64,000 bases of DNA from Sminthopsis crassicaudata (GCF_048593235.1 NC_133620.1:296685765-296749764); one strand, 5' to 3'; positions 386-2,397 are shown, numbered from the stretch's first letter. A program made the numbers and translations. The notes: generated by a model from the sequence alone, not told the origin.

Positions 386-549
386 TTCTGAACCAGCTGG
401 AGGAACTGCTGAGCGACATGAAGGCAGATGTGACCCGCCTTCCAGCCACTCTGTCCCGAATCCCTCCCATCGCAGCCCGCCTACAGATGTCCGAGAGAAG
501 TATTCTCAGCCGTCTGGCCAGCAAGGGCACAGAGCCCTATCCCACACCG
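386..549 (+). CDS. CHD3: CHD3 antepenultimate coding exon
   Basis: cccag|TTCTG ... ACACCG|gtaatc; VLNQLEELL...EPYPTP. Confidence 0.95.
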
Positions 550-1798
550 GTAATCCTCCACTCTCTTTACTTTAGACTAGGGTTCATTCCCTATGCCCCA
601 TATCCTATCAAAGACCCATGAAATGGAATAAAAAATACTCTGGCTGAAGGTATAGAATGTTCATTTCCATTGATAGACTCTCTTTTCTCAAATCTTATTC
701 TTCAAGGGACCCAAGAGTTTAGCTCTGGCTTTTCTTCCTTCAGCATCTTCCTGATTCAAAGACATGGATATTTTGCCTCCTATTCCAGGCCTTCCCTCCG
801 GGTCCCTACGCCACACCACTGGGGTACGGAGCAGCCTTCAGCTCAGCTGTACCCGCCGGGGTCCTGGCCGGCGGCGGCGCCAATTACAGCCAGATGCCCG
901 CAGGATCATTCATCACAGGTCAGCCTGGGGATAGGCATAGGGACTGGATCTGTGATTTCATTGAAATAGGATAGTCCCAGACAGGGAAACTCCTACTACC
1001 CATGCAGATTGACATCTTCTCCGCAATTTATAATCTTACAAAATTGCCTAGAACATTGAAAAGTAAAATGACTTGCTCTGGGTGACAGAATTATATGTCA
1101 GTCAGTACTTGAGTCAGGAGCCTTCCTGGTTCTAAGGTCAGCTCTCTTACTATTTCCAAATATCTGAGGTTACTCCCATTAACCTCTTTTGTCCCCTGAT
1201 TTCTTCCTAATTTCTCCTACTTTGTTGTTTCTCTTCTTCCCATATCCCTCAGTCCAACTTTAGTCTTGTTTTGTTCATCTCATAAGGGGAGCTCCTGTCC
1301 CTTCTGAGCCTTCTGAAATTCTTTCCTCATTCCAATCTTTCTAGGCTCTGCCTATCTTCTCATACTTTCTTAACTGAACGGAAGCTCTGTTACTCCCTCA
1401 TGTAGTAAAACTTCAGTAGTATCTCCTCATCTTCATAACTGTCACCCTGTGACTTAATTCCAAATAAGTTTGGGGGAAAGGAGATATGAAGTTAATATTC
1501 CCTTCTGGGAATTGGACTTAAACAGAGTTGTGTGAAGTCTTGGGAAAGGGAAATCAACCTAATCCTCAGTACTCTAAATGACATGAAACAATGTAGATAT
1601 GGGTGTGTGCCAAGTTCAAAATAATGAAGCTTAGATGTCACTTTGGGGCTTGATGATGTCTCAATAACCCTTCCCAAAACAGCCGCAGCCAACGGCCCTC
1701 CTGTGTTGGTGAAGAAGGAGAAGGAGGGGGCAGTAGTGTCCGACGGTCAGGATCGGAAGGAGCCCAGGGCTGGGGAAGTGATCTGTATAGACGACTGA
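386..1798 (+). CDS. CHD3: CHD3 (Mi-2 alpha) 3' end, partial: join(386-549,789-918,1683-1798); 5' part lies outside the window
   Basis: Spliced translation [48 protein letters not shown]...[14 protein letters not shown]...KKEKEG...EVICIDD* matches the CHD3 C-terminus, including the terminal VICID SUMO-interacting motif. GT-AG sites and phases are consistent. Confidence 0.96.
789..918 (+). CDS. CHD3: CHD3 penultimate coding exon
   Basis: ttccag|GCC ... ACAG|gtcagc; AFPPGPYAT...GSFIT. Confidence 0.95.
1683..1798 (+). CDS. CHD3: CHD3 last coding exon (TGA 1796-1798)
   Basis: aacag|CC; [14 protein letters not shown]...GEVICIDD*. Confidence 0.95.
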
Positions 1799-2397
1799 AA
1801 GGGCCCCAGCTCTGCCATTCAACCCGCCCCAGGGGCCGTCCTCCAGCCCACATCCCACCCCTGGAACTTGCTGCCAATCCTCCACCTTCCCCACCCCTTG
1901 GGCCACCATCAGGATAGGAGCCCCTTTCTCCTCCACCCTTATTTTCCAAACCAGGGCTTTCTCTCCGTGTTCCCCCATCCCTTTGCCCCAGGTGCCTTCT
2001 CCAGTGATTCTTTGAATGAAGGTGCTGTGGTTGGGAAGGGGTGTAAGGGAGTTGCTCTTCCAAAGTAGCTCCAATCTTAATACATTCAGCTCTCGAGCAA
2101 ATGGTTTGGGGTAAGAGGGGATGGAAAGAGGTAGGGCTTCCCCATTTTTCCCCATTCCCTTACAGTATTAAACTCTATCCTCAGTAACCAAGGAGGGGAA
2201 TTTGCCCTACCTGTCCCTTTCGGACCCACATGGGGAAATGGAAAAATTCTTGAGAAGGGAGGGAAAATCTTGAGGTGGGATGGGAAATGACCCCTAGGGG
2301 GAAGGGAGGGGAGTCATGGCTGCATGTTTCTCTCCTCTACCTCCCCAAAATTGAGGGTGGGAAATTGGGAGGGAGGGCAATCCATGTTCAGCCTCAG

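Follow-up and report, generated by a model that had tools for sequence, protein, structure and literature searches.

A second open reading frame across the last three CHD3 exons of Sminthopsis crassicaudata and the minor splice forms that may use it

The last three coding exons of CHD3 in Sminthopsis crassicaudata can be read without a stop in a second frame, and annotated forms of the same gene in other mammals enter that frame. We propose, with a probability of about 0.6, that real, translated and conserved CHD3 isoforms use the second frame, as minor splice forms in which the C-terminal tail of the protein is swapped for another. At the level of annotation these isoforms are already known, in three primates and, as a different form, in platypus, and the case described here is the ortholog of an annotated, uncharacterised isoform. 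The corrective message to the earlier note on this DNA is that the frame is real and old, that it is entered inside the window (the whole stretch of 64,000 nucleotides that was analysed), and that signs of dual coding are found only in the last two of the three exons.

The window opens with the 3' end of CHD3, where three exons on the + strand can be read from the sequence with AG/GT boundaries throughout. The third-from-last exon (386-549) measures 164 nt, not a multiple of three, in all 7 of the DNA sequences compared (the window and six placentals), and its canonical reading is (V)...GTEPYPTP. The second-from-last exon (789-918) has 130 nt here versus 127 nt in placentals; it ends in ...SFIT canonically and reads (G)...RRIIHH in the alternative frame, the latter translation including an Arg-rich motif of 15 residues (854-898). 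In the last exon the coding part (1683-1798) closes canonically with EVICIDD and a TGA at 1796-1798, and the alternative reading, ...GSDLYRRL, runs on into an extension of 39 codons (1799-1914) that is rich in P, R, S and G, ends in PPPSPPLGPPSG and is 3'UTR in the canonical mRNA. The alternative frame stops at a TAG (1915-1917) in the same exon, in a homologous column in 7/7 DNA sequences; a candidate polyadenylation signal, AATAAA, can be read from the sequence at 2398-2403. Membership in CHD3 is supported by the canonical C-terminus, which continues the CHDCT2 domain, ends in EVICIDD, and is 98% identical to placentals over 386-549 and 83-87% identical over the remainder. KCNAB3 is presumably the downstream neighbour to be expected, as on human 17p13.1, and runs of N occupy 13141-13275 (135 nt), 32902-33036 (135 nt) and 38537-38757 (221 nt), as gaps or masking.

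Read across the spliced exons, the alternative frame holds 175 stop-free codons from 387 to the TAG, 39 of them beyond the canonical TGA; the third frame of the same exons holds 8 stops. The 175-residue peptide quoted in the earlier note was reproduced exactly, with the same TAG and with the first exon ending at 549. That note had also remarked on the many CpGs kept in these exons. The remark holds, with an observed/expected ratio of 0.57-0.70 for the coding exons, of 0-0.06 for the introns and of 0.19 for 1799-1917, but the feature is not specific.

Protein records show where the frame is entered. A HMMER scan of protein representatives with the alternative peptide of the last exon returned one true match, the platypus model UniRef100_A0A6I8P1P5; the second match, P0001, is a low-complexity repeat protein and was treated as chance. 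A search with the platypus tail led to 'CHD3 isoform 7, partial' of Pongo abelii (PNJ12822.1), which has counterparts of equal length in Pan troglodytes (PNI36811.1) and Homo sapiens (KAI2581238.1/KAI4047749.1). This isoform reads ...NKPANAVLHK and directly continues with GLPPGSLRYTSG...; the junction NAVLHK/GLPPGS means that the 164-nt exon (386-549) is skipped. It ends in ...PPPSPPLGPSLG (orangutan PNJ12822.1), just as the earlier note had stated for eutherian CHD3. When the alternative-frame translation of the 164-nt exon was itself used as query, it led to 'CHD3 isoform 9, partial', again of Pongo abelii (PNJ12824.1), with counterparts in Pan troglodytes (PNI36813.1) and Homo sapiens (KAI2581237.1/KAI4047748.1). 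Its junction, NAVLHK/AGGVAERHEGG, places the acceptor 11 nt into the exon, after AACCAG, which corresponds to an exon start at 397 in the window; the carried-over G and the CT at 397 make a split Ala codon, and the rest of the exon is then in the alternative frame. Neither the exon length of 164 nt nor the acceptor shift of 11 nt is a multiple of three, and both yield the observed alternative frame. The primate records are partial models, annotated at the protein level. The protein searches covered representatives in a limited length range, where full-length annotated isoforms would be missed, and within that range no annotated protein from the window's own species was found.

The window resembles isoform 7 in its exon structure, in the 164-nt skip and the frame that results, in the Arg-rich motif and in an end of the form ...PPPSPPLGP-x-x-G; the predicted tail has 121 aa in the window versus 122 aa in orangutan. 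Compared with placental sequences, the alternative tail is about 70-75% identical over the overlap with the canonical reading and about 56-67% identical over the extension. With isoform 9 the window has in common the alternative reading of the third-from-last exon and an identical TTCTGAACCAG/CTGG, in which lies the candidate alternative acceptor (395-398, with AG at 395-396); four aligned sequences agree at each of the exon's first 19 nt. From this likeness we infer that the 397 acceptor may also be used in S. crassicaudata. Unlike the full alternative frame of the window, the isoform 9 record ends inside the next exon.

The earlier note had proposed another entry, through an extended donor of the upstream exon, but isoforms 7 and 9 both enter inside the window. 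We consider it very improbable that a longer upstream donor outside the window leads into 386 in phase 2, with translation of all 175 codons. The frame is open from 387, which would make such a transcript translatable, and the upstream exon of S. crassicaudata lies outside the window. However, neither annotated junction includes SEP, the residues encoded by 387-395, and in four placental loci the intron after ...CACAAGG starts with gtaagggccgcgg, with no shared GT at a frame-shifting position. The sole nearby GT, found in one species, would add 12 nt and stay in frame, and no protein with ...HK, one codon and SEPAGG was seen among the matches of 134-425 residues.

The alternative frame is preserved in other mammals as well. 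At the DNA level we compared the window with contigs of six different placental mammals (L002, L004, L005, L008, L009 and L010), through ORFs called on public contigs; orangutan and platypus were compared as protein records. A search for contigs that encode the orangutan isoform 7 record found none. Three further sequences, L011 (Logan SRR23625884), P0012 and P0018, show frame switches in the last exon and many small gaps, are most likely error-rich long-read contigs, and were left out of all counts. In the window and the six placentals the frame is open for 175-178 codons and the TAG falls in the same alignment column. Synonymous differences amount to 0.30-0.54 between the window and placentals and to 0.05-0.23 among placentals, which sets the window's species clearly apart from the placentals. 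Frequent stops in other mammals, named in the earlier note as a sign against the frame, did not appear in any of the 6 placental contigs. In an unguided alignment of the last exon there are 3 gap runs before the TAG (6, 6 and 3 nt), all multiples of three. The extension itself has 1 gap run (3 nt) in about 119 columns versus 18 in the next 300 columns, only 7 of which have a length divisible by three. Over the extension the window and placentals share an average identity of about 0.66, versus about 0.45 after the TAG, with the conservation extending about 15 nt beyond it.

The platypus model places the frame still further back. Its last two exons are translated in this alternative frame too, and it ends in GPPSS at the homologous place and keeps both frame and end despite a net length difference of 4 codons. 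The frame had been called therian-conserved, which stands as far as conservation across mammals goes and is too shallow as a date, because platypus reads these exons likewise. The entry in platypus is of another kind: the model retains a stop-free intron of about 85 codons (residues about 212-295) after the canonical third-from-last exon, and this retained-intron form may be either a real isoform or an annotation artefact. In contrast, the corresponding intron of the window (550-788) runs into an in-frame stop after 23 codons, and its length of 239 nt is wrong modulo 3, so the platypus route cannot work here. We rejected intron retention as an entry route in S. crassicaudata, as both introns of the window carry in-frame stops.

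How much weight does the open frame carry by itself? In this register an off-frame stop requires a canonical codon ending in T before a codon starting with AA, AG or GA. The window has 31 dicodons able to form such a stop, and T stands at the canonical third position in none of them; counting only codons that are able to end in T, 0/22 do so at risk positions versus 18/92 elsewhere (Fisher one-sided p=0.015). In placentals the same avoidance gives p values of 0.05-0.13. When the exons' own synonymous codons are permuted, the frame stays open in 4% of permutations overall, in 28% for exon 386-549 and in 17% for the rest of the overlap. A simulation with generic codon usage (P=0.001) was set aside in favour of this permutation. 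The extension is 48% C, and its other two frames in the window are open for 89 and 71 codons; since the stretch 1799-1914 is poor in stops in all frames, the openness of 39 codons past the TGA carries no weight as evidence. Judged from one genome, the open frame is at most suggestive.

Comparison between species separates the three exons, with small counts from few species (seven DNA sequences). For exon 386-549, 12-18 of the 15-21 differences between the window and placentals are canonically silent and change the alternative residue, and alternative-frame pN/pS is 4-14. The alternative frame of this exon behaves like the off-frame of an ordinary coding exon and shows no sign of constraint. 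Exon 789-918 has a pN/pS of 0.34-0.58 in the alternative frame and of 0.16-0.23 in the canonical one. Each of its 6 differences that change a canonical amino acid leaves the alternative residue as it is, so no difference is non-silent in the two frames at once, and all six lie at canonical position 2, which is alternative position 3, with none at position 1. On these comparisons, exon 789-918 looks truly dual-coding.

The Arg-rich motif within this exon is invariant in the window, the six placentals and orangutan, and platypus has its own 15-residue counterpart. Between the window and placentals its bases carry 6 nucleotide changes, all 6 silent in the alternative frame (nominal probability about 0.001, with about 29% of sites silent), a result that amounts to one comparison, because the motif was picked after inspection and the six placentals are identical there. 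In the canonical frame the same bases change 4 residues, from AGVLAGGG to VGALAAAG.

For the extension, a protein-guided alignment gives a pN/pS of 0.4-0.7, below both control frames in most pairs. Variable columns by codon position number 12/11/18 among all seven sequences and 7/5/10 among placentals, which is not significant, and an alignment made without protein guidance has roughly 14 silent differences among 40, hardly more than expected. The codon-level signal of selection on the extension is weak on these alignments; the scarcity of indels before the TAG and the drop in conservation after it are suggestive. Among placentals, synonymous divergence in these exons (0.11-0.12) is only slightly below that of the upstream exon (0.16); the earlier note had proposed a test for a reduced rate. 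Dual coding over all three exons, as that note had it, is too broad: it is supported for 789-918, where pN/pS is below 1 in both frames, but not for 386-549, where the second frame shows no constraint on the protein. Taken exon by exon, the comparisons offer reasonable evidence of a truly dual-coding region in the last two exons and none in exon 386-549.

The main alternative to translated isoforms is that GC-rich exons with few T-ending codons and a constrained canonical protein leave the off-frame open as a by-product, that the first 120 nt of the 3'UTR are a conserved RNA regulatory element, and that the annotated isoforms are low-level splicing noise, which a stop in the last exon makes tolerable. 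We give this explanation appreciable weight, while thinking it improbable on balance. Chance openness (P=0.28 for exon 386-549, 0.17 for the rest and 0.04 overall) is unremarkable for a case drawn from a large scan; the other frames of the extension are open equally long or longer, and the T-avoidance is only borderline in placentals. Because the extension is stop-poor in every frame, a conserved RNA element could explain its conservation, and both the lack of significant codon periodicity and the 15 nt or so of conservation past the TAG fit such an element. The unconstrained alternative frame of exon 386-549 and the partial state of the primate models point the same way.

However, constraint on the canonical protein alone does not predict a pN/pS below 1 in both frames of exon 789-918, or six changes in the Arg-rich motif that are silent in the alternative frame and alter four canonical residues. 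The 6 canonical non-silent changes of that exon, all at canonical position 2 and none at position 1, argue against a mere by-product as well. So does the strong depletion of indels ahead of the TAG (a single gap run over about 119 columns versus 18 in 300), where every one preserves the frame, and so does platypus, which keeps frame and end through a net 4-codon length difference.

We therefore return to translated minor isoforms as the preferred explanation, for which two routes may be envisaged. In the first, the 164-nt exon would be skipped, and the base carried over from the upstream exon would join GC at 789-790; this junction sets the alternative frame. The resulting tail of 121 residues would consist of G and the alternative reading of 791-918 and 1683-1914. 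In the second, the AG at 395-396 would serve as acceptor and the exon would begin at 397, with 11 nt removed, for a tail of 172 residues. By either route translation would pass the canonical TGA and end at the TAG (1915-1917). Skipping is probably the old route and the one under selection, and the first 50 or so residues of the second route look unconstrained. A stop in the last exon escapes nonsense-mediated decay. As had been claimed, the TAG lies in the last exon, which begins at 1683, and it is reached without any additional splice site; the mRNA should thus escape decay. We propose that these splice forms would also be made and translated in S. crassicaudata.

The alternative product would lose the last 17-18 positions of the CHDCT2 profile, being cut at position 128-129 of 146; in the platypus model, profile positions 130-146 lie in the canonical reading of the third-from-last exon. 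It would also lose the whole acidic tail that ends in EVICIDD. The alternative tail is basic and presumably disordered; it has a pI of 11.4-11.8 versus 5.5 for the canonical tail, is rich in Pro, Gly, Ser and Arg, contains the Arg-rich motif, and gave no match to a Pfam domain. The earlier proposal of a basic tail in place of the one bearing the SUMO-interacting motif (SIM) thus agrees with the pI and with the removal of the EVICIDD end. We hypothesize that the swap alters KAP1/SUMO binding or NuRD assembly, and that the Arg run may act as a nuclear-localisation element. A stronger version of the translated-isoform proposal is possible, though we hold it to be doubtful: skipping of the 164-nt exon would be a regulated switch older than the divergence of monotremes and therians, and would yield a CHD3 without SUMO-KAP1 binding and with CHDCT2 truncated. 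The motif would then be constrained above the canonical residues of the same bases, which would hint at a separate role for a SIM-less CHD3, for example in localisation or in binding nucleic acid.

The canonical C-terminus of CHD3 holds a SUMO-interacting motif that binds SUMOylated KAP-1 (PMC3472778, PMC4274264), and the same sources describe the EVICIDD end as the SUMO-KAP1 binding motif, just where the earlier note had put it. Through this tail CHD3/NuRD is anchored at SUMOylated KAP1, both in heterochromatin and during the response to double-strand breaks (PMC3472778, PMC4274264). If a splice form without the tail, and with CHDCT2 clipped, is conserved, the gene would have an intrinsic means of separating CHD3 from KAP1. 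Such a form could also bear on how C-terminal variants of CHD3 are interpreted in Snijders Blok-Campeau syndrome, since a substitution may be silent in one of the two frames and yet change the protein read in the other. Of the described isoforms, CHD3.1 has the C-terminal SIM and CHD3.2 is without it (review PMC3472778; PMC4274264). C-terminal isoform differences in CHD3 are, as this pair illustrates, recognised as functionally relevant. We rejected as unsupported the identification of the alternative tail with CHD3.2, or with 'isoform 2' of RefSeq/UniProt; 1966 aa, which we take to be the length of CHD3.2, fits neither frame-shifted tail.

Alternatively spliced dual-coding regions with different C-termini have been described, many of them preserved across mammals (Tress et al., bioRxiv 10.64898/2026.05.28.727796). 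CHD3 resembles this class (bioRxiv 10.64898/2026.05.28.727796; 10.64898/2026.02.24.707805) in its frame-shifting splice, its stop in the last exon and a frame that is mammal-wide. CHD3 is absent from the main text of both reports, and neither CHD3 nor Q12873 occurs in the 120 supplementary files of 10.64898/2026.02.24.707805, a Swiss-Prot-based dual-coding catalogue. Our literature search found no paper on the frame-shifted CHD3 tail or its conservation.

Some observations concern the introns around the 164-nt exon. The last 13-15 intron bases before it (window 371-385, ggcccgggccccag) contain many Gs for a polypyrimidine tract, and the matching intron ends of L002, L004 and L005 have nearly the same sequence, which fits a weak, regulated acceptor ahead of a skippable exon. 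A 2409-nt contig of ENA assembly ERZ14499289 (L001:1271-2016) keeps both introns that flank this exon and lacks the last intron, and resembles a CHD3 transcript, spliced in part, that ended up in a metagenome assembly. One of its retained introns, of 208 nt, has no stop and connects the canonical frame with the alternative one (protein P0008); in L004, a genomic contig whose species is the same or closely related, that intron has 210 nt and an in-frame stop. The first 40 bases of the intron upstream of the 164-nt exon (gtaagggccgcgg..gccccgcgcgggggagggcccacaa; L002:2609-2650, L004:931-970 and L005:593-632) are almost identical among placentals, a conservation unusually high for an intron.
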